In this document: one piece after another, positions 16,086-59,711 of the stretch
Layout of the letters: the number at the start of each line of letters is the position of its first letter
Numbering within the stretch: position 1 is the first letter of the stretch
Position numbers and translations under genes: made by a program
The notes under the pieces: generated by a model
The model's input: only the letters and a program-made list of their open reading frames with translations
Database searches by the model: none
What the model was told of the DNA's origin: nothing
NCBI GenBank assembly: GCA_964187785.1
Contig: OZ076414.1
Coordinates: forward strand, 51,274,001 to 51,338,000
DNA length: 64,000 bases
Reading direction: 5' to 3'
Source: Amphiscolops sp. MND2022
Taxonomy: Eukaryota

Positions 16086-19000
16086 ACAGTTAAGTTAGCC
16101 ACCAAATAAGTTCGCCATATACAAGTTCGCCAATTCAGTTCGTATTCAATTTCCATTGGCTGAAATGTGCGAAAAATAAACCTTGCGAACTTATTTGGTG
16201 CTAATTGAAACGTGGCTAAGTTTTACGGACGTTAGTGGCGAACTTACAAGGGCACCCTATTTAGATTCGAATAAAATAATTGAGGAAGAGTTGAACTAGG
16301 TAATTATTACGAGAAAAAACTTCAATCAGGGATATCAAAAAATTATTGTCGTTTATTAAAAACAAAAAAACTATGATCATATATTTTTCGGGAGCTCACC
16401 CTGGAATAATTCAATTTTGAAAATTGAATAGAAACCAGAGCCGCATGTGCGATAAAGGAGCCGGAAATGAATTGAATTATTGAAAAGTAAATTACGTACA
16501 TTATTGTCATTTGGTCAATTTTGGACTGATTTTTGCTATGTTTCTCAGATCCCAGTCATACAAATTTGATGTGATTGCGCACACAGGAGCACCTTTGCAT
16601 GTATAATGACTGCTAAATTTTATTCAAAATGGTATGGACAGTTTTTGAGAATTATGAAATTTTCATTAAAAGGTCGGGAGAAAAACGGTACGGGTGCAAA
16701 AGTAGTCAAAATTTTTTCCGACTTCTAAAAATTGTCAAATTTTGAACACTGAATAGTTGTTCCGGCTTGCTTAACTATGTGCATTGGATCCTTTACTATG
16801 ATTCAATGACTCAGATTCCAAGAACATCGAAGGTTGGAAGAACGCTTTTCAGCTGAGCAACGGTGAATCCTGGGTTGTTGCGTCCGGGATCCCACGTATA
16901 TACATTTAGAAGCAGACATATTCCAATTTCTAGATAGAAAATCAAAACAACTCAGCTTCTTTTCAAACACATAAAAAAGTTTCCATATTGAAATATTCAA
17001 TACTTGGACCTAACTTTTTTTACTAGAGAAAATTAAAAAATAAGTTATGGGTTCGAAATAGGTTTTAATGTAATTTAGGAAAGTTTGTTCCCTCAGGGAA
17101 AATAATTTTTTTTCTCGGTATCCCTGACAATAATTGGAACCATGAATTTAGTCGGGGATGAAAACAGAATTAACGCTTAGGGAGCGCAACTAAGCAGGAA
17201 TGAATAAACTATTTCACCAAACGTGGGTATTATAACATTTATGTCAAATTTCAATTTTGCATAAGCTAACACAATACAATACTCAGGTCTGCGTAGCTTC
17301 ACGATAACCTCAGGACAGTGAGGGAAGCCAAGAAAAAGGGGGAGTGATTCAATCTCATGCTTGAGTGAACAATAATGGGAGGGGAAAAGTGAAGAAGATT
17401 TGAGGGATGACCTCTTTTAAAACGGGATCACTTTCTTAGGCCAGGGAATGTTGGTTGGTAAACACATGACCAAACACGGAATGGAAATAAAAAAGTCTTT
17501 ATTTTTTATAAAATCTTATTGGCTATGGTATTTTTCATCTTACCTCTTCGAAAAAAAACATCAAGGCCGAATTACAGCTTTCGCTACTAATTCTAAATTG
17601 TTCAACCTAAAACGTAGGCCACACATGAAAACTTGGATGACTGTTTCACGAAAATTAGAATGTTTTTGCCTATTTTATCAACTCGTAATTCCAATTTGAC
17701 TCTTTTCAAGAGGAGTAGAAACAATGGATAAAACTTTTTTTTACAATTTGTACTTAATGTCTGAAAATCACTCACCATCAGTTTTTTTCAGGCTACTTCC
17801 TAATTATTCATGGCGGAAATCATTAATAAACACGTAAAACAAATAGGTTAAAAGAAGAATGTTTTTACTTACCTGAAGAAATGCAGCCTGTATTTCAAAG
17901 ATTGTGTAATTGAACAAAGATTGTACCAATGTCTCGATTCAAAAGAAAAATGTCGACATCAATACCATTGGACGACACTAACGGGGGTTGAAATAGGATA
18001 CCGGAACGCAGAATATAGTTTCCAGACTCCGGAATGAGCAAATCGCTTCCATTTGTGATCATTATTCATCACATGTGTCATTTCCGGTCAAGCCACCTAG
18101 CGCCAGAATTTGGTCAGAATTACTCGACCAATCTAAAGAACTTTCAATAAACGGAATTTTCTTTAGATTCCATGGATTGGAGCTAAAGGCGAATGATTGG
18201 CGAATGAGAACAACACTTTCAAGCAATACGTATCTTCAGACAGATTGGCAAGTTGTTCATCAATATTAAGTATTTTTGCCTCTTTAAAGTTCCACTCAAC
18301 TCGAACTGTGATAGCAAACTTCTATTTTTTTCAAACAAGACGTGACTGATGAAGAAAATACCCGTTGTTGCGTTCAATTATTGATTATTTCCTGTTGAAT
18401 TTATCAGCCATGTGATTAATTCGCCGCTCTGAGACGTTCGGCTAGTTATAACCTGGTTAGTTTCAAAGTTATAAATTGATAAAAAGCAGACTTTGTGTCT
18501 GAGACTCGGCTGATCAGTATCTGCGCCGCACATCAAACAGGCACTGAAGACCCGGGTAGGAGGTAGTTGATACCACATAGGCTCCCAAGAGACGGCGTTG
18601 CATAATCAAACAAGTCATTTGGTATTCATTCTTGCCCAAAACCCACAAAACAACGCTTCATAAAATTATCAAGACTACAGCACACCCTAATTACATTTCA
18701 ATAATTTTGTATATATTTTTTAGGATATTTTCCACCCCAGTATTACAAAATCTTCGAAAAATCCAAAAAAATGTCCGCTTTCCCTGTTTGAAAGTGAATC
18801 AGTTCTTATCCTTGATGATAAATCGAAAACTTCAGCGTTGAAAATGTACCTAAAGACCCTGCGGCCTCAAAAAACGCCGTAAAAAGCTCAACCATTATTC
18901 AAATAAAGCGAAAAAATCCGGAAATCATTAATCCGAAAAATTCCAAGATATCAAGAAACATATGGCTGGTTGCATTTGAATCCCACACCCGGTTATCACC

Positions 19001-19639
19001 GGGATATTTTCCGCCCTTCAGCGTCAAAACAGGGCAAGTTTTGCCTACTTTGAACACTCGTAACACCGAAGAATTTAGGCTTACATTTTTGATTCCGCGT
19101 GACAACTTCATGGGCCACTTGGTGGTGACAGAAAAACCCGCGTTTCAGTTTATTGCCTTTTTGGCTGCCAAATTAAAAAAAAATTGGCAAAAAAAACTTT
19201 TTTTGGATCTTCGAAGGTCATTTAAAATGTTACTCTGCAAGAAATTGTTTCCCAAAAGCTACCCCAGAAAGTTTCGACTTTCTCACGTTTATCATGAAAC
19301 TGTTGAAATAATCGAGAAAGGTTCAAATGTTTTGTCTCTGCATATTTTTATTTTGAGCAAACTATTATTTCCTTAAAAGGATCAGTTACCAAAAGATGGC
19401 TATTTTCATATTTTTGCGGAAATTGATGTCTTTTAAGAGGTTCTTTTCAAACAAAAATGTTAGTTCTAATCAATACTTTCCAAAATCCTGTCTCGTAAAA
19501 AACTCATCATTGATTGATTGGCACCAATTCAAGGTACGTAGTTTCCAAAAAAAGCATGTTGGGAGAAAAATTAAGGAAATTTTATTCAGTCTGATTTGAC
19601 TGTAAATGAAATTTTTTGCCAAGTAACCATTGGAAATTC

Positions 19640-26098: not shown

Positions 26099-35254
<9,156 letters not shown>

Positions 35255-41697: not shown

Positions 41698-42760
41698 TTT
41701 TTTGCATTATGTTACATTCCAGAGTTTTCATTCATACCTGAATTGAAAAGACCCCCTTTGATAATTCAATGTGAGATTAGATTGATCAGAATCCCATTCA
41801 TACGTGTAATATCGGCAATAAGAGACTCCCAACAAATTGGTACTGTATTGTGCTACAACGGATTTTCCTTCCAAAGGATTGGATCACAGTTTACCCTTTA
41901 TTTATCTGTGTTTAAAGTTGTGCTGATTTACCGTGTAGCGTGTTTGAATGCTGCAGAATTCAATCCTGAAATTGCGTGAAATCGAAAGTAGACGTTCCCC
42001 AAACGCTTCATTTACTGCTCTATACTTATACTATACCCTCTGTCTTGTTCGCCCGTTTCTTCCTCGTGAACTAAATTTGGACCTAATGAGCAACGAAACG
42101 AGCTAATTGGACCTATAGAGCAACATGGACATGAGAATTCGTGGAGGAGAAAAAACTAATGAACACATTTGCAAAGAGTGAGATTGATTCATACGGATTG
42201 ATTCGGTTGATGACGACGACGATGATATTGTTGATGGAATGTATGAAGGTGCCGCTGTATCCTTCAACTTAGTATCTACGCAAGATACTTGCAAAGGTGT
42301 TCGTATGTTCGAAATCTTCTTCAGAACAGAGAACCATACAAAAATTTTCCTTGGAGAAAGTAGGCTGTATTGATCTGGAAGCGTTCACTCCAATTTCGCC
42401 GGGCCTCCGTCACATGTGGAACGTTTCTGAACGTTTTGATTGAAAATGATCCTGTGAAACTTCTACATTCTGAGGTAATGGATCAACTTGATGTCTGGTT
42501 CCGCGGTGGTAACAACAGTGCAGTTGTAGAATCCATCCTGGCGATTGATCTGGACCAAGGGACTTTACGCTTCAGTTGCCACAACAGGACGTACGACTAC
42601 GTGCTGCCGATTGCATCTGATAAGTGATATACGGTGAACATTCAATAAGGCAAGGCTTCCGATGCTTTGATGGTGCTGGAAAATTACAACCATCCAAAAA
42701 CCTCGAAAGAGTAGTATACGAATTGCTGATCCTGATATAACCAGTCAATAAATTAAGCAT

Positions 42761-43517
42761 TTGTCTGTGGTTGTTATCATAACTGGTTTCTCTGATTTAT
42801 GAGTTCCTTCTGGGTATTCCTTGTTTGTAAACCCTAAAAGGGTGTTAAGTTCAAGAATTAAAATGTATATTAGAAGTTGTTTAAACGGATTTCATTGTTA
42901 GTGTATCTGCTTGTATGTTGGGTTCAAAATCGAAATCAGAAAGTGTTTGCTTGATGGTATTATTTATATCAACTAATTCATATACTCCTGGTGTTAACTC
43001 AATTTCAAAGAAATCATTTTCAATTCCAAATGCAGGAATATTTATATCATCTTTACGCGAAGCGCCTTCGGTGTCCTTGTTAATTCGATCAAATATTTTC
43101 TTTATCAAAATCTTTTTTGGTAAGTTTCTCATTTTTAGAATAACTATCAACTATAAAATTATCAACTTTTTCTATATCAGAGATTTTATATGAATACTCA
43201 ACATTCATTACCAATTGAGTGTCGATGTTTAATGATTTGAGTTGTTCGTCTTTCAGAAGAATTGTAAGTTTATTGTTGATGGTAGTTATATTATAAACTG
43301 TATTATGTACTTCTAAACTTCTTACTCCCATCATCCATTGTTCTGGCAGCTAGAAGAGAACATCGAATGAAAAAGATTCTTTTTGTTTAGTCATTTTAAA
43401 CTCTAGAGTTTCCTGAGGTTTGGATAAGGTATTTTCAACAATATTCAAATTAGATTTCGCAATACTCAACAAAAGAGATTCTTTTTTATCATAAGTTACA
43501 AAATTTGATAGATCCAC
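42761..43517 (-). pseudogene. Minor capsid (penton)-like protein remnant
   Basis: KPQETLEFKM...GVRSLEVHNTVYNIT..NNKL; ELTPGVYELVDINN; LLGFTNKEYPEGTHKSEKPV. Truncated at 42761. Family call from motif memory. Confidence 0.6.
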
Positions 43518-43712
43518 TTATTAAGAAAAAAATTGTAAACGTATATTTAAATTTTATGAAACTGTTTAAATCCACTAGCGGATATGTTGTTCATAAATTC
43601 TTGCCTCTCTTTTGATAATTTTTTACTTTTTGAATGGTTTTAATTTTGATTGGATTGTTCAGAGATAATTTTATATTGAGCTGAAAAACTTACCTTTTTT
43701 CATTTATTGAAA

Positions 43713-44105
43713 TTAAAAGTCTGATAGTATAAATTTAATACTGCATTTTTGAAGCCTATTTGTGAGATATAACACATACAAACAATACGCTGCACAATAA
43801 CTATCATTTTTCTGAAATTGATATTCCGAATAAAGACCATTTTATATTTGTTTCATTATGTTTACTGGAGGTGGACAGCCATATGAATAAAAAAACTTAT
43901 CAGAAAACATAACCCAATGTGTTCCTTTAGTTGGATGTAAGTTAACTATTCCTGCCGTAGTTGTAAACTTATCATCTCTCATGTATATTCGACAAGAATC
44001 ATGAATATCTAATTCATTACGTAATTCTTTCATTTTTACATTAGAAGTTGCATCATTTTATAGTCCGTAATTTTCAACAAATTCTTTGAATGATAAATAA
44101 TTCAT
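43713..44105 (-). pseudogene. Adenain-like (C5) cysteine protease remnant
   Basis: GIVNLHPTKGTHWV (catalytic His), YSYGCPPP, YQFQKNDSYCAAYCLY (Gln and catalytic Cys); two in-frame TAA codons. Confidence 0.85.
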
Positions 44106-44779
44106 TTAATAGTTTTCTTCATCGATTTCAATTTTTTTATTATTGTTTAAATGGAAAACCTCCAATTTTTACACATGTTTTGATAGGTATTTATTGCTGG
44201 GTTGACTGTACAAAAAACCCTTTGAAACAAAATGTGTGTAACTTTTGAATATCTACAACTTTTGTTTCTGATGTTTTTCTCATTATCTTTTCCCATGTAA
44301 TAAGATTAGGTATAAAAACTGATACTGAATTCAGTATTGAAAATAATACTGGACTGTTTGTGTCTGGTATTAGAAAACAATAGACATCTCTGTCTGGTAT
44401 TAGAAAATACTAGACAGCTCTAACAGGTATTTTTTCTTTGAAGTGAGTTTTCCAAGATATTTTAATATCTATGAAGTGAATGGTGGTTACTTTTCCAACA
44501 CTTGTGTTCCCACTTGAACGCATTCGGTAATTATTCATTTTCAATTTTTGTATTACACAGCAACGCTGGCTTCACATCTTTAGATGCATTACACATTACA
44601 CCATAGAGGTTTTGTTCCTTCATGGCAAATTTTTTCAATACGCAAGGCGCCTTCGGTTAAAATTTTTGTTCAGTGATTTTTTTGCTTTCAATTTTTAGTA
44701 ATGAAAAAACGGTAATTTTAGATGATTTGCCTCGAAAATATGCTTAATTTATTGACTGGTTATATCAGGATCAGCAATT

Positions 44780-44915
44780 CTTATACAGTTAGAAAAAGTA
44801 GGCGGTAACGCTAATCCTATGCTTAGTGAACAAATCATAGCAATTGTTGATAAACTCCTGGAATATGAATGTATTACAACAAATCAACATCAAAATATCG
44901 CAAGCTCCTTCAGTA
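44780..44915 (+). pseudogene. Small ORF remnant typical of Polinton-like elements
   Basis: LIQLEKVGGNANPMLSEQIIAIVDKLLEYECITTNQHQNI; resembles short xxAGN..EI.AI.DKLLEY proteins of such elements (from memory). Confidence 0.45.
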
Positions 44916-44986
44916 AGAAAGGATCAGTTTGTGGATTAAAGATCTGGTATTGCGGATTAGATTCATTACAAATCCTATATATTTTT

Positions 44987-45520
44987 TTACCAATCTTCTA
45001 ACCTATTTATTTCTAAATAATTATACTTCTCTCCCCATGCTTCTCTGCATAATTCTTTGAATTCATCATAAGACATATCAAGCCCAGCTATGTCTCTGTA
45101 TATATGTTCTACATCTTTCAAGGTTCGTTGAAAAAAAATATTATATTCGAATTGTTTCTAAATGTTCTTTTAGGTAAATCAAAATATGACTGTGATAAAT
45201 AATAAACTTCTAAATTATAATATCTTCTTCTAGTAAAAAATGCGTCTATTAGTTTTTGATTACCATCCAACATATCATCAAATACAACACAACAGTTTTG
45301 AAAATCTTGTATTGTTCCATCTTCTAGATCTTCTTCCACTGAAATGTCTTCTAATTCTGTATTTGTATAATGTTCCGGAGATCTAGTTATTATTTTTATT
45401 TATTTTTCACTATCACACAATCGAATTAATTGTAATTTGTTTAATAACGAATGAGTCTTACCACAAAATGATGGACCAACTATTAATGTTCTATTATACA
45501 GCAAAGCACCTTCGGTATTA
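44987..45520 (-). pseudogene. A32/FtsK-like DNA packaging ATPase remnant
   Basis: Walker A RTLIVGPSFCGKT (~45450-45490), Walker B CVVFDDML, FFTRRRYYNLEVYYLSQSYFDLPK..RNNSN; one TAA and one homopolymer frameshift. Confidence 0.9.
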
Positions 45521-45659
45521 TTATAATTATCATTATTTAAAATATTTTCATTATAATTATTTATAATAATTTCATTACTATTATTTATAATAATTTCAAA
45601 AATTATTATAATCGGTATTATAAATATTTATAAATTTATTATCATTTTAATGCAGCTTC

Positions 45660-45894
45660 TTGATAAGGCATCTCTCGATATGTTTTGATGAATATGTTCT
45701 ATTGAATTCCGTACTACAAAATTCATATTTTACTTTTTTTTATCGAAACATTCTATACACGGACTATATATTTTATCGTTTTTATACTTATAAAAATCTG
45801 TTTTCAATATCTTACAGTCCTTACATAATTTTTTATTACTACAATCATTGCAAATTGAAGTTTCACTATTTTTATCACAAATTAAACACTTCAT
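45660..45894 (-). pseudogene. Cys-rich putative zinc-binding viral protein remnant
   Basis: MKCLIC....ICNDCSNKKLCKDC....SPCIECFDKK, followed by a frameshift. Confidence 0.5.
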
Positions 45895-46246
45895 CTATTT
45901 AGTAAAGAAAATCACGAAGTCACTAAGCAAATTCACTATCAGTTTATCTTCTCAAGTTTAGAAAATAAGTGAAAATTTATGCTCTTAGTGAATTTGCTTA
46001 GAGACTTTACTAAGAAAAGCAGTAAGAAATCAAATCCAATATTTTACTGTCTTTCGGTGTAATTAATTGCCTGATCAAGTATAAATTTCTTAAAGTCCTC
46101 TTTAGCTGTGTTTGGAATCAGTGGTTGTTGCATCCTTTCTATTTGATTATCTATTTTGGATTCATACACTTTTATTTTATTTTGTTTACAATACTCCACA
46201 TAATAAAAAGCTATATTATAAGGTGTTAATTCAATTGTCTGGTCAG

Positions 46247-48102
46247 TTGTTGGGCAGTTACACTTGGATTTGAAAACTTTCATAGCTTGGCCGACTTTTA
46301 GTACAACTAGGATTAATATCTCAATTTCCAGCCTCAAAACGTTCTTACCTCGACTGGCCACGTCAGTAGCTAGAAGAACTCGAACTTCGCTGTCTCTGAA
46401 GGCGTCGATTGCATCTTCACGTGCACATTGTTCACGCCCACCGTGAATTGATTCCACAGGCATGCCATCAATGGCACATTTACTGGCTAGTTGGTCCACA
46501 ACAAGTTTTTTGCCGATAAAAACGATCATTTTGTCATCGGGTTTCATCTGTTCGATCATTTCGTACAGCAAAGCATTTTTTCATCATCTTCCGCAAAGAT
46601 GATTTGTTGAGTCACTGAATAAGAACGAGGATGTAAAAACGATCATTTTATATTTTACAAAGAATTCACCATGCATTCATGATTTAAGCTGACAACTGGA
46701 GGCAAAATGCTTTTGCACACGACCGAGGGACATGCGTTCTTGACAATTCACAGCTTGCCACAATTCAAGCTTGTTCTAAAAATTTCTTTTCGAAGAGGTC
46801 TGTCTGTGTTTCTACGACGATAGTTCCTCTGAAATTTGGGAGATCACCTGATAAATAAAAATTCGCAATACTGGTTCACTTGATTGAATGCTACAATGAA
46901 AACTTTCTTTGGATCTCGTTCATCATGCCCCCCCCCCCTATATCACTGGTTACACTATCTCCCCCTTAGAGAGAAAGAATGTTTGTGGTTCATTTATATT
47001 TATCTCCTATTGGCTAATTTCTCCTGCTATTCTGTCAATCAATTGATCTCGTCATAACTATCGACTTTTTATTGGCTCTTATGAAAATCCCCACTCAGCC
47101 AATCAGAAGCGTTGTTAACTAAGAGCAGATCTGCGCTATTAGAATGTGCAATACGTGTATTTAACAGTGTTTCACTTAGTCCAACCCTTTTTTGCTGTAG
47201 GATAGGGGCATAGTGAAAGAGATCCCTTTCTTTTCGCTTAAGATAATTCCGAAAAATTGATTAGAACAAATCTGAGAAAAACCATGAAGTCATCCAAAAG
47301 TGAAATTTGTCCCAACTTTTCAATATTCATTCCTCGAAAATGCAACAAAACCTCGAACATTGGCTCCACTCAAATCAATCTGAATTAGTTTAGAATGATA
47401 ACAACACCGAGAAAATAAGTAAAATTAGAGAAAAATCGGACCATGTGTTCAATTCCTCCCAGGTACACCTTTTTGCGAATTCAAAACATGAAAGCACATT
47501 TCGTTCTTGAACAAAAATATTTCACTAATAAGAGAATATTATAGGAATGTAAATACTTAGAGGATTGTCTATACAACTGTTTTCACACTTCAGGCAAAAA
47601 ATCACCCTTATTTTTGACATTATTGTCCAAAATAGTAGAAATTCACGCTTGGAACAAGCTAAAATCGTATAAATTGGCCATTATTTCAAAGCAAATTTTC
47701 TCCGTGATATAATCTAATGAGCAACTTTGAACTGACAGTTAATGTAATAGATTGGATAATGTCGACATCAATTATTTTATTGGACCAAAATTTCAACGCA
47801 AACGATGTCGACATAATGGTATTTAAACCTTGTGCCTTATTTCACCCTGTGGGGGGGGGTTAGCAATACGACACATTGTCCGAAAAATCGATTAGATAAT
47901 TCTACAACTGCAGTTTTCCGGGCAAAATACCTCAAGAGAAAGAAAGCAAAAATGTGCGAAATGTTAAATGGAATGGTTCTACATATCGAAAACTTTTGAT
48001 TCAACTTTATTTGAAAGGAATTCAGTGAAACAAATCTGAGAAAATCCAACTTCAATTCGTCAAAAAATCGTCTCCTTTCAAATATGTCAAGAAGTAATCT
48101 TT
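46247..48102 (-). pseudogene. DDX43: Segmental duplicate of DDX43 exon 4 with flanking intron sequence
   Basis: Aligns to ~27597-29213. Includes exon 4 (about 46348-46614), the same MITE, and an extra ~260 bp at about 47335-47595. Confidence 0.93.
46911..47225. mobile_element. Duplicated copy of the intron-3 MITE
   Basis: Same TIRs; TSD here is a perfect CTTTCTTT on both sides. Confidence 0.85.
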
Positions 48103-48120: not shown

Positions 48121-48777
48121 ATGAGTAACAAATCGACGGGGGGGGTTAGTTAGCAAAATAAAATTTCATTTTCATGAACTAAAGACTTCAACAAAGACTA
48201 AAATTCAGCAAAACAAAAACTATGAGTCCTCCTGTGTTGAAAAGTGGAAGCCCAAGACTCTCGCGGGTCGTATTGTTAAACCTGGCGACGTCACAAACAT
48301 CAAGCAACTGAGACGACTGAAATTGGAAATCAGGGAGCCGGAAACAGTATAGACACTGCTACCTGACCTTAAAGAAGAAGTGTTAAAGGTTACAAACATC
48401 GGACAGGGCCAGTATCAACGAGAGGCCTTCGTCATTGTAGGAGACGGTCAGGGATTGATAGGCCTTGGGAAGCGTTGTAGTTCCAACGACCGCGAGGCCA
48501 TCGTCGGCGCGAAACGGAACGCTCGATTGTCATTGTTTCAAATAAAGTTCCGCAGAACAAAACGGTACCCAAGGTCGTGACCGGAAACTTTGCGAACGTC
48601 ACAGTGAAGCTGGAGCCCTTTGTTAAAGTCATTCTGGCACAACCGATGATAGTCCGCATACTAGAGATGGCGGGCTTCGAGGCTGCGCTACAAACGGGGA
48701 ACTGTGAAAAAGGAACTGGATCACTAATCGAGGCTGTTTTTGATGCGTTGAACAAACTTGTTAGTTCATTAGTTTGA
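48121..48777 (+). pseudogene. RPS2: Divergent uS5/RPS2 paralog, copy 1 (has ATG exon and 64-nt intron; disrupted)
   Basis: Exon 48121-48144, intron GTTAGT..TTCAG 48145-48208, then QNKNYESSCVEKWKPKTLAGR; TAG at 48350 and a 1-nt deletion near 48545. Confidence 0.8.
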
Positions 48778-49724
48778 CATTTTGTTTTCATTTATGAATT
48801 CAATTTCAACCTGCACTTATCATTTTCTTGTGATAAATAGCTAGTTGAATGGATTCGTCCAACATGCGATAACTTGTTCCTTGGGTTCTCTTCCAAACAT
48901 GTTGTGTTGTGGATAATGAAACATCCGGCATGGACTTACTACGCCATAGTGCCAGGTGGTCCAGGGCGGCATTGATGAAACCTTGTCAACATGTTTGAGA
49001 CTTGTTTCTTGTTAAATTCCTCTTTACAAATCGAGTTTAGATACTCAAAGTTTCGTTTCCATACACGCTAGGTACATTTTACGGATATGGGGCCGCATTC
49101 AGGCCTGCGGGGGCAGCATTAAAGACCAGAATTTTGCTTTTATAGCCAAGCATTTTCCATATACAAATCTGTGTGCCATGCACGCCTAGCGGGCTATCAT
49201 CATGGTCGAAGATGTTCAACTGGCCAGAAGATCCGAATTTTTGTAGATTCGAAGTTTTTTGTTTTTTTTCTGAGTGAAATCACAAAACATGGCTGAATAA
49301 GCCGTCTCATTTCAATTTGAATTCTTGATAAATCTTCAATTCATGAATTGATAAATCTTCATACTCGATCTCTCCTCCAAAGTCCAAATTGATATGAACT
49401 ATTGAGAAATTGAGCGATCAGTTTCTAGTGATAGAGTGTTCAATTTTGAGTCAAAACCAGCGGTCAATGAGAAATCGAACAGTCGCTCCTCAAAATCAGA
49501 GGGAGTTATATTGAGAGTGAAAATTTTGAACTTAATAGGTATATGAATAATTTAAGAATCACCAAAAAGTGAAGGATCATTCCAGTAGGTTTGATACTGA
49601 CAAATGAGATAAATTATCTGCAAAAATGTGAAAAATCAAGTCTATCATTGGAACATTCCAATTTGATTGAAAACGAATTCCAGTGATGGGTTTGGAGTTG
49701 GGTGCCAAAACTGAGTAAATTGTT

Positions 49725-49797
49725 TATACAGAATATTGTATATACAAAATATTGTATATAAAAAATATTGGATATACAAAATATTGTATACACAGAA
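49725..49797. repeat. 16-bp near-palindromic minisatellite at the start of segment B (also in B2 and B3)
   Basis: About 4.5 copies of TATACAAAATATTGTA starting ~10 bp after the A|B junction. Confidence 0.85.
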
Positions 49798-50905
49798 TAA
49801 GGTGCACGGCACGTTTGATTGTTTGAAAGTGTAATGTAATGTAGATTGTGTTCTCAATGGCAATGAACAAAACCATTAACTCAAGTCATTCCGGGGAATT
49901 AGAAGCATACTTGGAAAATGCCCCTGCCAATTTTTGTCAAGATCACATTGTCAACACACTTCAACATTACTATCTTTTTCAATTAACTACTCACACCTCC
50001 CCTTGAAATCCCCGTACAACTTTTCCCTTACTCGTCCCTCTGAGCGAGCACTTAACCCGTAAGGAAATACAATCCCTTGCTTCTAGAGCTCCTTCACACT
50101 TTCTGAGAAGCCAACTAAAACAACTTATTCCACAGTGGAGGGAATTGGTTCTATTTTATGAACAATTAATGCGAATAACTACAACTGTGTATCCCCTCAT
50201 CTTAATTTTATTCCCTTTTTCCTCTTTCATTCTCCTAACCCCTTCAACCGACCCCTTCCTGATTTTTCTATGCATGATGCATAAACTGTTGCCTGTGCAC
50301 AAACTGTTGAGTGAAAACATATGATGCTTATATACATGTAAAACTTTCTTTTAATTTATATAATTTATCCATTTCACCTAACCAGTCATAAAAGCAAATG
50401 TGCCTGATTTGAACAAAATTTTTAGCAAACTGCAACCGCATTTGAGTTCAGATGGATATTGAAATTTTTCGGAAAAATGAATGAGTCTGGAAAAAGGTTG
50501 CTGGCTGGTATTGTGCCTATTGCTTCTTTTTAGCTTAGGGAACTTCAAAAATAACATTCATAGGCATGTACTAACAGAAAAATTGACCATCGTTACGCCT
50601 AGTAGTTGACGAAACCTTTTCTTCAATACTGTCAACTTTGAACTACATAATACTAACTTCCATTCTGCGCGAATATTCTACACGTATTGTTACTTGGATT
50701 TTATTCTTTGCCAGTACATAAAATTGTTCCAACTTACCAATCTCGTTCAGTCTGTGTTTTTAGATTGGTGTTTCCGTGATTTTTCAGTTTTGCTTTGTTT
50801 ATATTCGAAAACTGTTGACTTTCGAAAACTGTCGAACAATGTCCATATCCAATTCCTCCTCGTCAACTCCTTCCACATCTACACCCTCTACTTTCTTTCT
50901 CAACA

Positions 50906-51457
50906 TCCTCCTGTGTTGAAAAGTGGAAGCCCAAGACTCTCGCGGGTCGTATTGTTAAACCTGGCGACGTCACAAACATCAAGCAACTGAGACGACTGAA
51001 ATTGGAAATCAGGGAGCCGGAAACAGTATAGACATTGCTACCTGACCTTAAAGAAGAAGTGTTAAAGGTTACAAACATCGGACAGGGCCAGTATCAACGA
51101 GAGGCCTTCGTCATTGTAGGAGACGGTCAGGGATTGATAGGCCTTGGGAAGCGTTGTAGTTCCAACGACCGCGAGGCCATCGTCGGCGCGAAACGGAACG
51201 CTCGATTGTCATTGTTTCAAATAGAAGTTCCGCAGAACAAAACGGTACCCAAGGTCGTGACCGGAAACTTTGCGAACGTCACAGTGAAGCTGGAGCCCTT
51301 TGTTAAAGTCATTCTGGCACAACCGATGATAGTCCGCATACTAGAGATGGCGGGCTTCGAGGCTGCGCTACAAACGGGGAACTGTGAAAAAGGAACTGGA
51401 TCACTAATCGAGGCTGTTTTTGATGCGTTGAACAAACTTGTTAGTTCATTAGTTTGA
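50906..51457 (+). pseudogene. RPS2: Divergent uS5/RPS2 paralog, copy 2
   Basis: Same frame; TAG at 51029; no ATG exon. Confidence 0.85.
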
Positions 51458-53583
51458 CATTTTGTTTTCATTTATGAATTCAATTTCAACCTGCACTTAT
51501 CATTTTCTTGTGATAAATAGCTAGTTGAATGGATTCGTCCAACATGCGATAACTTGTTCCTTGGGTTCTCTTCCAAACATGTTGTGTTGTGGATAATGAA
51601 ACATCCGGCATGGACTTACTACGCCATAGTGCCAGGTGGTCCAGGGCGGCATTGATGAAACCTTGTCAACATGTTTGAGAGTTGTTTCTTGTTAAATTCC
51701 TCTTTACAAATCGAGTTTAGATACTCAAAGTTTCGTTTCCATACACGCTAGGTACATTTTACGGATATGGGGCCGCATTCAGGCCTGCGGGGGCAGCATT
51801 AAAGACCAGAATTTTGCTTTTATAGCCAAGCATTTTCCATATACAAATCTGTGTGCCATGCACGCCTAGCGGGCTATCATCATGGTCGAAGATGTTCAAC
51901 TGGCCAGAAGATCCGAATTTTTGTAGATTCGAAGTTTTTTGTTTTTTTTTCTGAGTGAAATCACAAAACATGGCTGAATAAGCCGTCTCATTTCAATTTG
52001 AATTCTTGATAAATCTTCAATTCATGAATTGATAAATCTTCATACTCGATCTCTCCTCCAAAGTCCAAATTGATATGAACTATTGAGAAATTGAGCGATC
52101 AGTTTCTAGTGATAGAGTGTTCAATTTTGAGTCAAAACCAGCGGTCAATGAGAAATCGAACAGTCGCTCCTCAAAATCAGAGGGAGTTATATTGAGAGTG
52201 AAAATTTTGAACTTAATAGGTATATGAATAATTTAAGAATCACCAAAAAGTGAAGGATCATTCCAGTAGGTTTGATACTGACAAATGAGATAAATTATCT
52301 GCAAAAATGTGAAAAATCAAGTCTATCATTGGAACATTCCAATTTGATTGAAAACGAATTCCAGTGATGGGTTTGGAGTTGGGTGCCAAAACTGAGTAAA
52401 TTGTTTATACAGAATATTGTATATACAAAATATTGTATATAAAAAATATTGGATATACAAAATATTGTATACACAGAATAAGGTGCACGGCACGTTTGAT
52501 TGTTTGAAAGTGTAATGTAATGTAGATTGTGTTCTCAATGGCAATGAACAAAACCATTAACTCAAGTCATTCCGGGGAATTAGAAGCATACTTGGAAAAT
52601 GCCCCTGCCAATTTTTGTCAAGATCACATTGTCAACACACTTCAACATTACTATCTTTTTCAATTAACTACTCACACCTCCCCTTGAAATCCCCGTACAA
52701 CTTTTCCCTTACTCGTCCCTCTGAGCGAGCACTTAACCCGTAAGGAAATACAATCCCTTGCTTCTAGAGCTCCTTCACACTTTCTGAGAAGCCAACTAAA
52801 ACAACTTATTCCACAGTGGAGGGAATTGGTTCTATTTTATGAACAATTAATGCGAATAACTACAACTGTGTATCCCCTCATCTTAATTTTATTCCCTTTT
52901 TCCTCTTTCATTCTCCTAACCCCTTCAACCGACCCCTTCCTGATTTTTCTATGCATGATGCATAAACTGTTGCCTGTGCACAAACTGTTGAGTGAAAACA
53001 TATGCTTATATACATGTAAAACTTTCTTTTAATTTATATAATTTATCCATTTCACCTAACCAGTCATAAAAGCAAATGTGCCTGATTTGAACAAAATTTT
53101 TAGCAAACTGCAACCGCATTTGAGTTCAGATGGATATTGAAATTTTTCGGAAAAATGAATGAGTCTGGAAAAAGGTTGCTGGCTGGTATTGTGCCTATTG
53201 CTTCTTTTTAGCTTAGGGAACTTCAAAAATAACATTCATAGGCATGTACTAACAGAAAAATTGACCATCGTTACGCCTAGTAGTTGACGAAACCTTTTCT
53301 TCAATACTGTCAACTTTGAACTACATAATACTAACTTCCATTCTGCGCGAATATTCTACACGTATTGTTACTTGGATTTTATTCTTTGCCAGTACATAAA
53401 ATTGTTCCAACTTACCAATCTCGTTCAGTCTGTGTTTTTAGATTGGTGTTTCCGTGATTTTTCAGTTTTGCTTTGTTTATATTCGAAAACTGTTGACTTT
53501 CGAAAACTGTCGAACAATGTCCATATCCAATTCCTCCTCGTCAACTCCTTCCACATCTACACCCTCTACTTTCTTTCTCAACA

Positions 53584-54116
53584 TCCTCCTGTGTTGAAAA
53601 GTGGAAGCCCAAGACTCTCGCGGGTCGTATTGTTAAACCTGGCGACGTCACAAACATCAAGCAACTGAGACGGAGCCGGAAACAGTATAGACATTGCTAC
53701 CTGACCTTAAAGAAGAAGTGTTAAAGGTTACAAACATCGGACAGGGCCAGTATCAACGAGAGGCCTTCGTCATTGTAGGAGACGGTCAGGGATTGATAGG
53801 CCTTGGGAAGCGTTGTAGTTCCAACGACCGCGAGGCCATCGTCGGCGCGAAACGGAACGCTCGATTGTCATTGTTTCAAATAGAAGTTCCGCAGAACAAA
53901 ACGGTACCCAAGGTCGTGACCGGAAACTTTGCGAACGTCACAGTGAAGCTGGAGCCCTTTGTTAAAGTCATTCTGGCACAACCGATGATAGTCCGCATAC
54001 TAGAGATGGCGGGCTTCGAGGCTGCGCTACAAACGGGGAACTGTGAAAAAGGAACTGGATCACTAATCGAGGCTGTTTTTGATGCGTTGAACAAACTTGT
54101 TAGTTCATTAGTTTGA
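53584..54116 (+). pseudogene. RPS2: Divergent uS5/RPS2 paralog, copy 3
   Basis: 19-nt deletion near 53672 plus TAG at 53688; no ATG exon. Confidence 0.85.
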
Positions 54117-56245
54117 CATTTTGTTTTCATTTATGAATTCAATTTCAACCTGCACTTATCATTTTCTTGTGATAAATAGCTAGTTGAATGGATTCGTCCA
54201 ACATGCGATAACTTGTTCCTTGGGTTCTCTTCCAAACATGTTGTGTTGTGGATAATGAAACATCCGGCATGGACTTACTACGCCATAGTGCCAGGTGGTC
54301 CAGGGCGGCATTGATGAAACCTTGTCAACATGTTTGAGAGTTGTTTCTTGTTAAATTCCTCTTTACAAATCGAGTTTAGATACTCAAAGTTTCGTTTCCA
54401 TACACGCTAGGTACATTTTACGGATATGGGGCCGCATTCAGGCCTGCGGGGGCAGCATTAAAGACCAGAATTTTGCTTTTATAGCCAAGCATTTTCCATA
54501 TACAAATCTGTGTGCCATGCACGCCTAGCGGGCTATCATCATGGTCGAAGATGTTCAACTGGCCAGAAGATCCGAATTTTTGTAGATTCGAAGTTTTTTG
54601 TTTTTTTTTCTGAGTGAAATCACAAAACATGGCTGAATAAGCCGTCTCATTTCAATTTGAATTCTTGATAAATCTTCAATTCATGAATTGATAAATCTTC
54701 ATACTCGATCTCTCCTCCAAAGTCCAAATTGATATGAACTATTGAGAAATTGAGCGATCAGTTTCTAGTGATAGAGTGTTCAATTTTGAGTCAAAACCAG
54801 CGGTCAATGAGAAATCGAACAGTCGCTCCTCAAAATCAGAGGGAGTTATATTGAGAGTGAAAATTTTGAACTTAATAGGTATATGAATAATTTAAGAATC
54901 ACCAAAAAGTGAAGGATCATTCCAGTAGGTTTGATACTGACAAATGAGATAAATTATCTGCAAAAATGTGAAAAATCAAGTCTATCATTGGAACATTCCA
55001 ATTTGATTGAAAACGAATTCCAGTGATGGGTTTGGAGTTGGGTGCCAAAACTGAGTAAATTGTTTATACAGAATATTGTATATACAAAATATTGTATATA
55101 AAAAATATTGGATATACAAAATATTGTATACACAGAATAAGGTGCACGGCACGTTTGATTGTTTGAAAGTGTAATGTAATGTAGATTGTGTTCTCAATGG
55201 CAATGAACAAAACCATTAACTCAAGTCATTCCGGGGAATTAGAAGCATACTTGGAAAATGCCCCTGCCAATTTTTGTCAAGATCACATTGTCAACACACT
55301 TCAACATTACTATCTTTTTCAATTAACTACTCACACCTCCCCTTGAAATCCCCGTACAACTTTTCCCTTACTCGTCCCTCTGAGCGAGCACTTAACCCGT
55401 AAGGAAATACAATCCCTTGCTTCTAGAGCTCCTTCACACTTTCTGAGAAGCCAACTAAAACAACTTATTCCACAGTGGAGGGAATTGGTTCTATTTTATG
55501 AACAATTAATGCGAATAACTACAACTGTGTATCCCCTCATCTTAATTTTATTCCCTTTTTCCTCTTTCATTCTCCTAACCCCTTCAACCGACCCCTTCCT
55601 GATTTTTCTATGCATGATGCATAAACTGTTGCCTGTGCACAAACTGTTGAGTGAAAACATATGATGCTTATATACATGTAAAACTTTCTTTTAATTTATA
55701 TAATTTATCCATTTCACCTAACCAGTCATAAAAGCAAATGTGCCTGATTTGAACAAAATTTTTAGCAAACTGCAACCGCATTTGAGTTCAGATGGATATT
55801 GAAATTTTTCGGAAAAATGAATGAGTCTGGAAAAAGGTTGCTGGCTGGTATTGTGCCTATTGCTTCTTTTTAGCTTAGGGAACTTCAAAAATAACATTCA
55901 TAGGCATGTACTAACAGAAAAATTGACCATCGTTACGCCTAGTAGTTGACGAAACCTTTTCTTCAATACTGTCAACTTTGAACTACATAATACTAACTTC
56001 CACTCTGCGCGAATATTCTACACGTATTGTTACTTGGATTTTATTCTTTGCCAGTACATAAAATTGTTCCAACTTACCAATCTCGTTCAGTCTGTGTTTT
56101 TAGATTGGTGTTTCCGTGATTTTTCAGTTTTGCTTTGTTTATATTCGAAAACTGTTGACTTTCGAAAACTGTCGAACAATGTCCATATCCAATTCCTCCT
56201 CGTCAACTCCTTCCACATCTACACCCTCTACTTTCTTTCTCAACA

Positions 56246-56791
56246 TCCTCCTGTGTTGAAAAGTGGAAGCCCAAGACTCTCGCGGGTCATATTGTTAAAC
56301 CTGGCGACGTCACAAACATCAAGCAACTGAGACGACTGAAATTGGAAATCAGGGAGCCGGAAACAGTATACACATTGCTACCTGACCTTAAAGAAGAAGT
56401 GTTAAAGGTTACAAACATCGGACAGGGCCAGTATCAACGAGAGGCCTTCGTCATTGTAGGAGACGGTCAGGGATTGATAGGCCTTGGGAAGCGTTGTAGT
56501 TCCAACGACCGCGAGGCCATCGTCGGCGCGAAACGGAACGCTCGATTGTCATTGTTTCAAATAGAAGTTCCGCAGAACAAAACGGTACCCAAGGTCGTGA
56601 CCGGAAACTTTGCGAACGTCACAGTGAAGCTGGAGCCCTTTGTTAAAGTCATTCTGGCACAACCGATGATAGTCCGCATACTAGAGATGGCGGGCTTCGA
56701 GGCTGCGCTACAAACGGGGAACTGTGAAAAATCAACTGGATCACTAATCGAGGCTGTTTTTGATGCGTTGAACAAACTTGTTAGTTCATGA
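56246..56791 (+). CDS. RPS2: Divergent uS5/RPS2 paralog, copy 4 (open 181-codon body, no in-frame start found)
   Basis: WKPKTLAGHIVK..IREPETVYTLLPDLKEEVL..AFVIVGDGQGLIGLG..AI.GAK..A.LS..TVPKVVTG..VTVKL..ILEMAG..AVFDAL aligns with uS5. TAC at 56369 where the other copies have TAG. Confidence 0.7.
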   Translation, partial: SSCVEKWKPKTLAGHIVKPGDVTNIKQLRRLKLEIREPETVYTLLPDLKEEVLKVTNIGQGQYQREAFVIVGDGQGLIGLGKRCSSNDREAIVGAKRNARLSLFQIEVPQNKTVPKVVTGNFANVTVKLEPFVKVILAQPMIVRILEMAGFEAALQTGNCEKSTGSLIEAVFDALNKLVSS

Positions 56792-59711
56792 GTTTGACAT
56801 TTTGTTTTCATTTATGAATTCAATTTCAACCTGCACTTATCATTTTCTTGTGATAAATACCTAGTTGAATGGATTCGTCCAACATAAGATAACTTGTTCC
56901 TTGGGTTCTCTTCCAAACATGTTGTGTTGTGGATAATGAAACATCTGGCATGGACTTGCTTACTACGCTATAATCCCAGGTGGTCCAGGGCGGCAATAAT
57001 GAAACCTTATCAACATGTTTGAGACTTGTTTCTTGTTAAATTCCTCTTAACAAATTGAGTTTAGATACTGAAAGTTTCGTTTCCATACACGCTAGGTACA
57101 TTTTACGGATATGGGGCCGCATTCAGCCCTGCGGGGGCAGCATTAAAGACCAGAATTTTGCTTTTATAGCCAAGCATTTTCCATATACAAATCTGTGTGC
57201 CATGCACGCCTAGCGGGCTATCATCATGGTCGAAGATGTTTAACTGGCCAGAAGATCCGGATTTTTAGTAGATTCGAAGTTTTTTGTTTTTTTTTCCTGA
57301 GTGAAATCACAAAACTTGGCTGAATTAGCCGTTTCATTTCAATTTGAATTCTTGATAAATCTTCAATTCATGAATTGATAAATCTTCATAGTCGATCTCT
57401 CCTCGAAAGTCCAAATTGAGATGAACTATTGAGAAATTGAGCGATCAGTTTCTAGTGATAGAGTGTTCAATTTTGAGTCAAAACCAGCGGTCAATGAGAA
57501 ATCGACCAGCCGCTCCACAAAATCAGAGGGAGTTATATTGAGAGTGAAAATTTTGAACTTAATAGGTATATGAATTATTTAAGAATCAGCAAAAAGTGAA
57601 GGATCATTCCAGTAGGTTTGATACTGACAAATGGGATAAATTATCTGCAAATATGTGAAAAATCAAGTCTATCATTGGAACATTCCAATTTGATTGAAAA
57701 CGAATTCCAGTGATGGGTTTGAAGTTGGGTGCCAAAACTGATGTGATATTTCTATTCGGCTGAAAAATCTATCAGGAATTTTACCTAAACATTCTAGGGC
57801 AATTCATTCATCTGCCAAAATTTAAATCATGACCCTGTTTTTTTTCTGGTTTTGTTTTTTAGCCATGATAACTTTAAAAAATTAGCTCCAAGTAGAGAAA
57901 GTTGGATCTTAGTGAAGCTCTAGTTCAAATCAAGTTGAGTGCAACAAAATACTCAGTTTATCACAAATCAACGGTCAAACTCGAAATTTCAATTGGTTCG
58001 CTTCTCCGCCGCTTGTCAGTAAATTTTGGAACTCTTGGTGCCTGCTACAACCAAGTGCAACTCAGGAAGTTTACAAATTCCGAATTTCCGATTCTTTATC
58101 CCAGCCAGGGATGATGTGACACGGGAGATGTGACAGTGGGAGCCGACATCAAATGACAGTTTTCTCGTGTTAGTATTTTTGTCGAGTAGGCTCTCCAACA
58201 GCGTATATGGGTGATTGTTACAAAAGTGTAGGTCTCAAAGGAGCGTCGATTTCGAAGATGATGATCATCAGTGAGGTGCTTCTTCACTCAGATTCGTTCT
58301 TGAAGCAGCAAATCTGAGATTAAAATATTATTTCATTGAGTTGGAGAACACGCGTTAAGACGAGCCCACATGAATTCGGACTATGTAAAGAGATAGGTGA
58401 TAAAAGAGTGGGCAGGATACCTGATTATTAGGGCTATAGTATATAGAATTAGATTAGGGTTGATATAGTATATAGAAAGAGCATGAACAACAACAAAATA
58501 CCAGATTACTACGTGGAATCTACTCATGAAGAGGCAGATGCTCCTGCATCATCTGGTTCAATTGCAGCTCGCTCCTCTGTCTGTCTCCTTCCTTTGTTGT
58601 TGTGCCCGTCCCCTCTTCTTTGTGGTCCCTCCTATGGAGCCGGTGGCTGGGACTAGTCGTCCGGACATATCTGCGCCTGTTGGGGCACCGGGGCTGTCCG
58701 CTTTTCCCGTTCAGCGTTAGCACGGTTTATTAACACCGGGTGATATACAAAGATCGGGAGACACTTATGGACATCTATGATTGGGGGATGTCCGGCAATT
58801 ACAAGCTGGTTGTTTAGGTTGTGCTCGTTGGTAGCGTGGGTTTCTTACAAAATACCTGTGAGGGTTGTTGAGAGGGTTCGGAAAAACTTTTGGTCCAAAA
58901 TTGTTCTCTCTCAAAATTGCATGAAGAAGCAGAAAACACTTCTGTGACCCGCTTTATCGTTGTTATAAAGGTGATCAAAATGTTTTGTCAAACGAGATCA
59001 TCATGATGTCCAAGTTCTTTGTGATGACTTCAAGCGAGGCTGTGTTTATGTGCGTCATCACGTCAGAGTTTTTCCTTTTTACGATGGAGAAATTTTCCTT
59101 GGCTGTGAAGATAGTGCGCCAATTAACATCCACCGAGTTTGAAACATATGCGGAAATCAGGAAGCGCAATCAGTTTGAGAGCTTCTTGAGTACAAGTGCG
59201 CGAAGTGAGCCTATGTAATGGAAGATTTCAAAATGCTACACTTTCATAACAAATTTTTCCGAAACATTTGTTGGGGAAACCATTTAGAAGTTTGTGCTGA
59301 ATTCAAAAATTTATTCAAACGCATGGATTCGGTTGATGACGACGACGATATTGTTGATGAAATGTTGCATGGAGGTGCCGCTAGTTCCTTCTAAATAGAA
59401 TCTACGCAAGCTATTTACCAAGGAGTTCGTATGTTCAAAGTCTTCATTGAAAAAGGGAACCAACTGAAATTTTCCTTGGGGAAAGTGGGCTGTCTCTATC
59501 TGGAAACGTTCTCCCCAATTTCACCGGGCCTCCATCACACGTGGAAGGTTTCTGAACACGATTCGATTGAAAATGATCATGTGAAATTTCATTTTCTTTC
59601 ACTTTTGAAATCAAACGTAAATTGAACATGTCAGGTATGAAATGAAAACAAGCCTTTAATGTCATTCAAATCAGAACAAAATCACTGTAAAGACTAGAAA
59701 GACTGATTTGA

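Follow-up and report, generated by a model that had tools for sequence, protein, structure and literature searches.

Ribosomal protein genes are commonly taken as a hallmark that divides cells from viruses. The closest described systems are those in which a virus carries such a gene. Phages encode ribosomal proteins, of which viral genomes have yielded 14 kinds (PMC6375957). Among eukaryotic viruses, the first such protein was reported in 2024, namely eL40 of giant viruses (PMC11499249). Here, a gene related to the ribosomal protein uS5 (RPS2) is described from a 64,000-nucleotide stretch of DNA of Amphiscolops sp. MND2022 (GenBank assembly GCA_964187785.1, contig OZ076414.1, positions 51,274,001 to 51,338,000 of the forward strand). 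This whole stretch is referred to as the window, and coordinates given without a prefix are window positions. The gene belongs to a family that is carried as cargo by Maverick/Polinton elements in this genome. The four copies in the window form a tandem array that very probably arose by segmental duplication of a decaying element fragment, one that consists only of the uS5-derived accessory gene, a conserved 3′ non-coding element and one unit of an 83-bp satellite. The window locus is a by-product of the Maverick uS5 family.

The array and its copies of the uS5-like open reading frame (ORF) are located as follows.

48227–57741, plus strand: tandem array of 3.57 units, delimited by self-BLAST and repeat families.

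48227–48777, plus strand: uS5-like ORF of copy 1, truncated at its 5′ end at the array edge, with TAG at 48350–48352 and, in the alignment of the copies, one base missing near 48545.

50839–51457, plus strand: copy 2, with the ATG at 50839 out of frame with the S5 body, TAG at 51029–51031 and an open body at 51035–51457.

53517–54116, plus strand: copy 3, with the ATG at 53517 out of frame, a 19-bp deletion near 53671 and TAG at 53688–53690.

56179–56791, plus strand: copy 4, with the ATG at 56179 out of frame and the S5 body open from 56159 to the stop at 56789–56791.

Self-BLAST of the unit at 53301–55980 against 44–64 kb of the window gave unit lengths of 2680, 2659 and 2681 bp, arranged head-to-tail. 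Copies 2 and 3 are full units, copy 1 lacks the 5′ part and copy 4 extends over the first 1.78 kb only; every unit contains one intronless uS5-like ORF. Identity among copies 1–3 is ~99%, and that of copy 4 to these three is 96.5%.

The S5 N-terminal domain (PF00333), which resembles a double-stranded RNA-binding domain (dsRBD), was detected in the window copies at 42.4–43.2 bits against a cut-off of 27.1 (E values of 4e-11 to 7e-11). The S5 C-terminal domain (PF03719) reached 15.5–16.8 bits in the same copies (E values of 0.005–0.012), which is below the cut-off of 21.5, and 28.4 and 31.6 bits in other family members, which is above it. An AlphaFold model was obtained for the natural open frame of copy 4 (56255–56788, 178 residues). 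The mean predicted local distance difference test (pLDDT) score of the model is 82.6, the domain order is that of uS5 and the fold of the S5 C-terminal domain is predicted at a pLDDT of ~90. The best 50 Foldseek matches of the model in the PDB were all uS5 chains (49 eukaryotic and one archaeal), with TM-scores (TMq) of 0.82–0.86, sequence identities of 29–34% and E values down to 2e-15. The uS5 scaffold reported in a preliminary description of this DNA was thereby confirmed, both by the PF00333 score and by the match of the model to eukaryotic uS5 (TM-score of 0.85).

To our knowledge, three rRNA-contact loops are universal among S5 families, namely the basic hairpin, the PH of the inter-domain linker and the P-x-x-GTG loop. 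The uS5 hairpin lines the mRNA entry channel. In an alignment of the window uS5-like ORF with the canonical RPS2 of this genome, the basic hairpin QKQTRAGQRTRF of host RPS2 is replaced by the shorter IGQGQYQRE and the linker RRGYWGNKIGLPH is replaced by EVPQNK. The RRGYWGNKIGxPH linker is missing together with its PH, the APRGTG loop is collapsed and the RGG or RG-rich tail is missing. The loop replacements noted earlier (GQGQYQRE and EVPQNK), the APRGTG collapse and the lack of an RGG tail were therefore all recovered against the RPS2 of the organism itself.

Relatives of the ORF were sought in the complete genome (G000, 1.07 Gb; L-numbers denote fetched loci and contigs). The copy 4 protein gave at least 148 scored matches among 313 first-look candidates, and PF00333 gave 150 among 347. 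The uS5-like matches are found on all chromosomes, and the majority are open frames of 180–290 residues without stops. Several copy sets have the same score on different chromosomes; in three of these sets, the copies are alike over more than 7 kb of their 10-kb contexts (92–99% identity), and the long ORFs there bear signatures of a family-B, protein-primed-type DNA polymerase (PolB). These PolB-like ORFs of 1403–1483 residues adjoin the uS5-like gene and are 56–89% identical among elements; a PDB sequence search with them gave no match. A search of the genome with the polymerase C-terminus gave 84 scored places among 3761 first-look candidates. At about 50 of the 84, a uS5-like match lies 1.5–4.5 kb past the PolB 3′ end, on the opposite strand and convergent with it. 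Among these places are the nearest relatives of the window copies (C13:18.03 Mb, C2:43.53 Mb, C4:86.60 Mb, C11:34.08 Mb, C5:4.98 Mb and C1165), for which the synteny was judged by coordinates only. On the strength of this fixed convergent synteny, the uS5-like gene is a regular Maverick/Polinton gene in this genome.

Two metagenome-assembly contigs, L027 and L048, contain close relatives of the window gene, each facing a polymerase ORF (1403 residues in L027; 1015 and 455 residues in L048). An rve integrase is located in L027 at 3416–4360 (47.1 bits, cut-off 32.6) and rve is also found in L048. An A32-like packaging ATPase at 5191–5916 of L027 is marginal (Pox_A32, 23.8 bits, cut-off 22.8). 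Many of the scored polymerase copies in the genome have open frames of 1470–1483 residues, and these, together with the 3761 candidates, indicate that Mavericks are extremely abundant and that many have seemingly been active recently.

Three further features of these contigs were recorded. In the 20.6 kb analysed of L027 (an ENA contig) the Maverick-like gene set is repeated head-to-tail with a period of ~17.4 kb, and one gene of 442 residues at 891–2219 and 18261–19589 is 99.8% identical between its two occurrences, which points to a tandem integration or to a concatemeric or circular form. In L048 the precomputed Pfam annotation places a viral fusion glycoprotein (Monjiviricetes_fusion) at 4068–5222, a few kilobases from the uS5-like gene. 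The same contig holds a second integrase of retroelement type in addition to the Maverick genes.

Selection on the family was assessed using the proportions of nonsynonymous and synonymous differences (pN and pS). Natural open copies have pN values of 0.15–0.30 and pS values of 0.77–0.96, the latter being saturated, and low pN with saturated pS shows long-term purifying selection on the family. Judged from these values, the family has been maintained by strong purifying selection inside the elements. The preliminary description had envisaged, as one outcome, an old pseudogene with no intact paralogue and a ratio of nonsynonymous to synonymous substitution rates of about 1; many intact relatives were found instead. 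Among 13 diverse members, Ile82, Gly83 and Tyr87 of the remodelled hairpin are invariant and Gly85 is nearly so, and the pattern of conservation indicates that the hairpin is not degenerate and has acquired a new conserved IGxGxY motif. In the N-terminal segment of the same members, Trp31, Pro33, Thr35, Gly38, Arg39 and Gly44 are invariant. This WKPKTxAGRxVKxG segment has pLDDT scores of 48–67 in the copy 4 model. We take the segment to be ordered only through intermolecular contacts, with which the low pLDDT would be consistent. The family is basic, with isoelectric points of 9.1–10.3 and net charges of +3 to +16, compared with +16 for the core of host uS5. One subfamily (L035 type, 189 residues) has longer, more canonical loops.

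The uS5-like proteins diverge far more than the polymerases beside them. Among L027, L035, L039, L042 and L048 the polymerases are 82–88% identical where the uS5-like proteins are only 31–42% identical. The divergence of the two genes is uncoupled, which implies either a much higher rate of evolution in the uS5-like gene than in the polymerase or an exchange of the former as a cassette.

Two non-coding features follow the ORF in each unit.

56867–57100, plus strand: conserved non-coding element directly 3′ of the ORF, also at 48847–49076, 51527–51756 and 54186–54415.

57101–57183, plus strand: one unit of the 83-bp satellite, also at 49077, 51757 and 54416.

The 3′ element (~230–250 nucleotides) has a mean column identity of 88% over 17 copies, which were taken from elements with saturated synonymous sites in their coding sequence. 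It is better conserved than the ORF: the window and L027 (10658–10909) are 94% identical in the element and 67% identical in the protein. The palindrome AACATGTT occurs in it twice, ~100 nucleotides apart. No conserved ORF and no three-base periodicity were found over the 17 copies, Rfam and tRNA scans of the element were blank and RNAalifold gave no covariation support (covariation term of +0.8). The element could be a cis element (an origin, promoter or terminator) or an unknown RNA. In full Mavericks the 83-bp satellite fills the gap between the uS5-like gene and the PolB gene, and Tandem Repeats Finder identified 8.5 copies of the 83-bp unit at 10893–11597 of L027.

Tandem clusters of uS5-like genes were also noted elsewhere in the genome. 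At least nine matches lie within 8 kb at C3:58049776–58057901 and seven within 17 kb at C7:42172019–42188918; three units of 1826 bp at C1:32400300–32405736 adjoin a broken PolB gene, and two of 2179 bp lie at C12:6789614–6792191. Within these clusters some copies are open and others contain stops. As clusters are present on several chromosomes, tandem duplication of the uS5-like gene region is recurrent, and the adjacent 83-bp satellite may drive it locally.

The window array is a fragment of a Maverick/Polinton element and not an element. Other elements match the window unit only at unit positions ~248–1199, which cover the ORF body, ~230 nucleotides downstream of it and the first 83-bp repeat unit; the homology ends after that repeat (query position 1199). 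When all long ORFs of the fetched Mavericks were compared with the 64-kb window by tblastn, only the uS5 ORF and the repeat unit were matched. Neither polymerase, integrase nor terminal repeats were found in the window insertion by tblastn and an inverted-repeat search, the latter of which detected no repeat of at least 80 bp in the window. Among the fetched relative loci, none has a counterpart of the 5′ flank of the uS5-like ORF. The ORFs around the array are of host type according to Pfam: they comprise a helicase gene with KH and DEAD-box domains and a second copy of one helicase exon. In an annotation, the array is to be entered as pseudogene copies of Maverick origin and not as RPS2 paralogues, and the similar ORFs, which number in the hundreds across the genome, are to be kept out of any tally of host ribosomal protein genes.

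All four copies are disabled in the assembled haplotype. The S5 body of copy 4 extends over 210 codons with no in-frame ATG ahead of the domains; it has TAC at the site of the TAG in copies 1–3 and stops two codons earlier than the other copies. The ATG of copies 2–4 starts a Ser/Thr-rich frame that is closed after 26 codons, and the S5 body follows in another frame. In intact relatives the equivalent Ser/Thr-rich start runs straight on into W-K-P-K-T, which locates the frame break between the ATG and W-K-P-K-T. Because copies 2–4 share this state of the start region, the comparison suggests that the break predates the duplication of the fragment. A gene split across the array, with its start exon in copy 1, was considered and ruled out: copy 1 is the copy without a start region, and the left junction has an ATG (48222) in the wrong frame. 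Two statements of the preliminary description have to be amended accordingly. The protein of ~195 residues that was reconstructed there is not an ORF in the assembly, as the ATGs at 50839, 53517 and 56179 are in a different frame from the S5 body. The tandem amplification is real as an array, but as the copies are disabled in the assembled haplotype and the fragment stands alone, it represents segmental duplication of a decaying fragment and not adaptive amplification of a gene.

Several observations weigh against reading the array as dead copies of a Maverick gene. Contigs from two of the four same-sample runs differ by four letters at 56231, within the frame-break stretch, and both TAC and TAG are found at 56371 among same-sample contigs. 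The sample therefore contains more than one frame state near the start, in unphased form, and the statement that all copies are dead is limited to the assembled haplotype. Copy 4 is changed at only two of 17 positions that are otherwise invariant in the family, and any decay of this copy must therefore be recent. The sequencing-run index for this organism lists four runs from one sample, none of which is recorded as RNA. As regards the elements themselves, the Pfam polymerase families (DNA_pol_B_2 and DNA_pol_B) score 15.5–23.1 bits, one just at the cut-off (DNA_pol_B, 23.1 versus 23) and the rest below it. The element genes examined were PolB, the rve integrase and the A32 ATPase.

One alternative explanation is a domesticated host gene, in which a co-opted Maverick uS5 has been adaptively amplified and gives rise to a functional protein, with copy 4 or the other haplotype as possible sources. 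The open 210 codons of copy 4 with so few changes at invariant positions, the polymorphic start region in the reads and the recurrence of tandem clusters (C3:58.05 Mb, C7:42.17 Mb, C1:32.40 Mb and C12:6.79 Mb) are all compatible with it. However, each assembled copy carries at least one disabling lesion, the out-of-frame start is common to copies 2–4 and the 5′ flank is not shared with any relative among the fetched loci. The C1 array adjoins a PolB gene with stops, the adjoining 83-bp satellite offers a neutral route to tandem duplication and no RNA runs for the organism are present in the index. Domestication is considered improbable, and the decaying Maverick fragment is retained as the preferred reading.

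The origin of the family was examined by maximum-likelihood trees, in which it forms one clade (98/95) with copy 4 inside, beside L005, L006, L013, L014 and L027. Archaeal S5 (99/96) and eukaryotic uS5 (95/79) form separate clades; all three join at a single node, so that the branching order does not by itself identify the donor. In six alignment columns, among them the Cys of GLGxKC, the family agrees with eukaryotes and differs from Archaea, and in one column the reverse holds. An exhaustive profile search ranked eukaryotic uS5 directly behind the family; word-based and language-model searches ranked archaeal uS5 first. An archaeal or other horizontal origin, in which the element acquired a prokaryote-type S5, would account for the ranking in the latter searches and for the archaeal length of the proteins, which lack both eukaryotic extensions. 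It is at odds with the starred archaeal clade, from which the family is absent, with the six columns against one, with the profile search and with the JGI metagenome scan, in which the only matches were S5 genes at 26–34% identity that were taken as ordinary archaeal. This origin is very improbable. The archaeal resemblance pointed out in the preliminary description is best explained by the short, extension-less format; the family lies outside the sampled Archaea in the trees, and the derived columns favour eukaryotes. To judge from these alignments and trees, the family most likely arose by an ancient capture of a eukaryote-type uS5 by an element.

The host RPS2 genes were identified as the two standout matches to PF00333 in the genome, both on C5 and each scoring 107.6 bits. 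Each has two exons, and the uS5 that they specify is typical of animals: the three loops are all present, as are the RG-rich N-extension and the C-terminal tail, and the identity to several arthropod and nematode uS5 proteins is ~80%. The host RPS2 is thus ordinary, and not as divergent as the window ORF, an eventuality that the preliminary description had allowed for. The two canonical copies (C5:874121 and C5:66370840; L045 and L046) are 65 Mb apart and their proteins are near-identical. A third kind of uS5-like gene seems to be represented by an exon in L023 (G000:C1:84639802–84642933, minus strand), which reads KKEWIATTKLGRLVKNGYVSTLEEIFRHNIPITG, matches positions 1–44 of PF00333 at 51.7 bits and stops where an intron could begin; it is neither of the canonical RPS2 nor of the Maverick type.

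That the array derives from an old host RPS2 paralogue or a processed RPS2 pseudogene, unrelated to mobile elements, would agree with an intronless, uS5-like ORF, and the approximately unbiased (AU) test rejects neither a clade of the family with host RPS2 (p = 0.09) nor one with animals (p = 0.22). Such a derivation is scarcely credible, as copy 4 is 36% identical to host RPS2 but 53–66% identical to Maverick-borne copies, is nested with starred support within the Maverick clade and has the 3′ non-coding element and the 83-bp repeat in common with the Maverick copies. The old paralogue of the preliminary description is partly right: the ORF is a real, old and strongly remodelled derivative of a eukaryote-type uS5 and not a young RPS2 retro-pseudogene, but it is a standard Maverick/Polinton gene and not a host paralogue. 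Finally, an assembly artefact in which one copy was wrongly expanded to an array, near-identical 2.66-kb units being a classic site of assembler error, is hardly tenable, as the same-sample short-read data contain the array-internal unit-to-unit continuation, the array-end junction at 57741 and both copy-specific variants (56371 and 56732–3), with a read depth of the unit ~2.2 times that of the unique flank.

Two features to the left of the array were recorded. A Helicase_C ORF at 46044–46571 (minus strand), just left of the array, is 98.8% identical to the exon at 27663–27920 (minus strand) of the DEAD-box/KH helicase gene at 27.5–35 kb and continues into unrelated sequence after the exon-like part; it is therefore a stray exon copy. 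The stretch at 42700–46250 (minus strand) is AT-rich (27–34% GC) with short ORFs, in which motifs recalling a packaging ATPase (VVFDDM...YLSQSYF) and an adenoviral-type protease (GTHWV) were seen by eye; these are unconfirmed. In this 42.7–46.2 kb stretch no Pfam match, no BLASTP match to proteins of the uS5-bearing Mavericks and no link to the array were found.

Public protein collections contain ~15–20 clusters of the family (at 50% identity), none of them named; their sources are ENA or Logan assemblies that represent four or more samples. A scan of IMG/VR with the family profile gave no relative, and no uS5-like fold was found in the BFVD viral structure library. Full-text literature searches returned no paper linking Polintons, Mavericks or adintoviruses to uS5/RPS2. 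A uS5-derived viral cargo family is unusual and apparently undescribed.

The intact family protein may be an element-made mimic of uS5 that acts on the host 40S subunit or on its assembly. The protein retains the two-domain uS5 core and the N-terminal WKPKTxAGRxVKxG segment, has exchanged the entry-channel hairpin for IGxGxY and has lost the PH and GTG rRNA-contact loops. In the mature 40S subunit, uS5 contacts 18S rRNA and is connected with eS21, uS2, uS8, uS4 and uS3, and the N-extension of host uS5 serves the chaperone PDCD2 and methylation by PRMT3 (PMC10216425). Because this extension is missing, the mimic would bypass the PDCD2/PRMT3 route. We infer a role directed to the 40S subunit or its assembly only tentatively; a function unconnected with the ribosome would fit the loss of the rRNA-contact loops just as well. 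A non-ribosomal RNA-binding role, exerted through the dsRBD-like domain, is only slightly less likely, and the remaining probability falls to nucleic-acid binding in the virion core or to another role. The more specific proposal that the Maverick variant replaces or blocks host uS5 at the 40S mRNA entry channel, giving element-specific ribosomes or a shut-off of host translation, is unlikely. If true, it would be the first core ribosomal protein known to be both encoded and re-engineered by a virus-like element of an animal. With purifying selection and reshaped entry-channel loops in the same family, the tuning or hijacking of ribosomes by a mobile element becomes a directly testable question.

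Compared with eukaryotic cytosolic uS5 (RPS2), the Maverick family has the same two-domain fold of a dsRBD-like S5 N-terminal domain and an S5 C-terminal domain (TM-score of 0.85), and it shares the archaeal/eukaryotic N-terminal W-x-P-x-T...GR-x-VK segment and the IKEPEII and GLGxKC motifs. It differs in having neither the RG-rich N-extension nor the C-terminal tail, in its shortened hairpin with an IGxGxY motif in place of the basic sequence and in the loss of the PH linker and GTG loop. Its proteins have 175–210 residues and are 36% identical to host RPS2, and its genes are intronless, encoded by mobile elements and present in hundreds of copies. Accessory genes for host interaction often diverge faster than the polymerase. 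The uS5-like gene resembles the accessory genes of Maverick/Polinton (adintovirus-like) elements in this respect, being far more divergent between lineages than the polymerase, and also in its fixed position beside protein-primed PolB on the opposite strand. The parallel with phage-encoded ribosomal proteins and giant-virus eL40 is that a host ribosomal protein has a homologue in a virus-like element. Here, in contrast, the carrier is a Maverick/Polinton in an animal genome, and its product is a heavily remodelled, not a near-canonical, form of one of the core rRNA-binding proteins at the mRNA entry channel.

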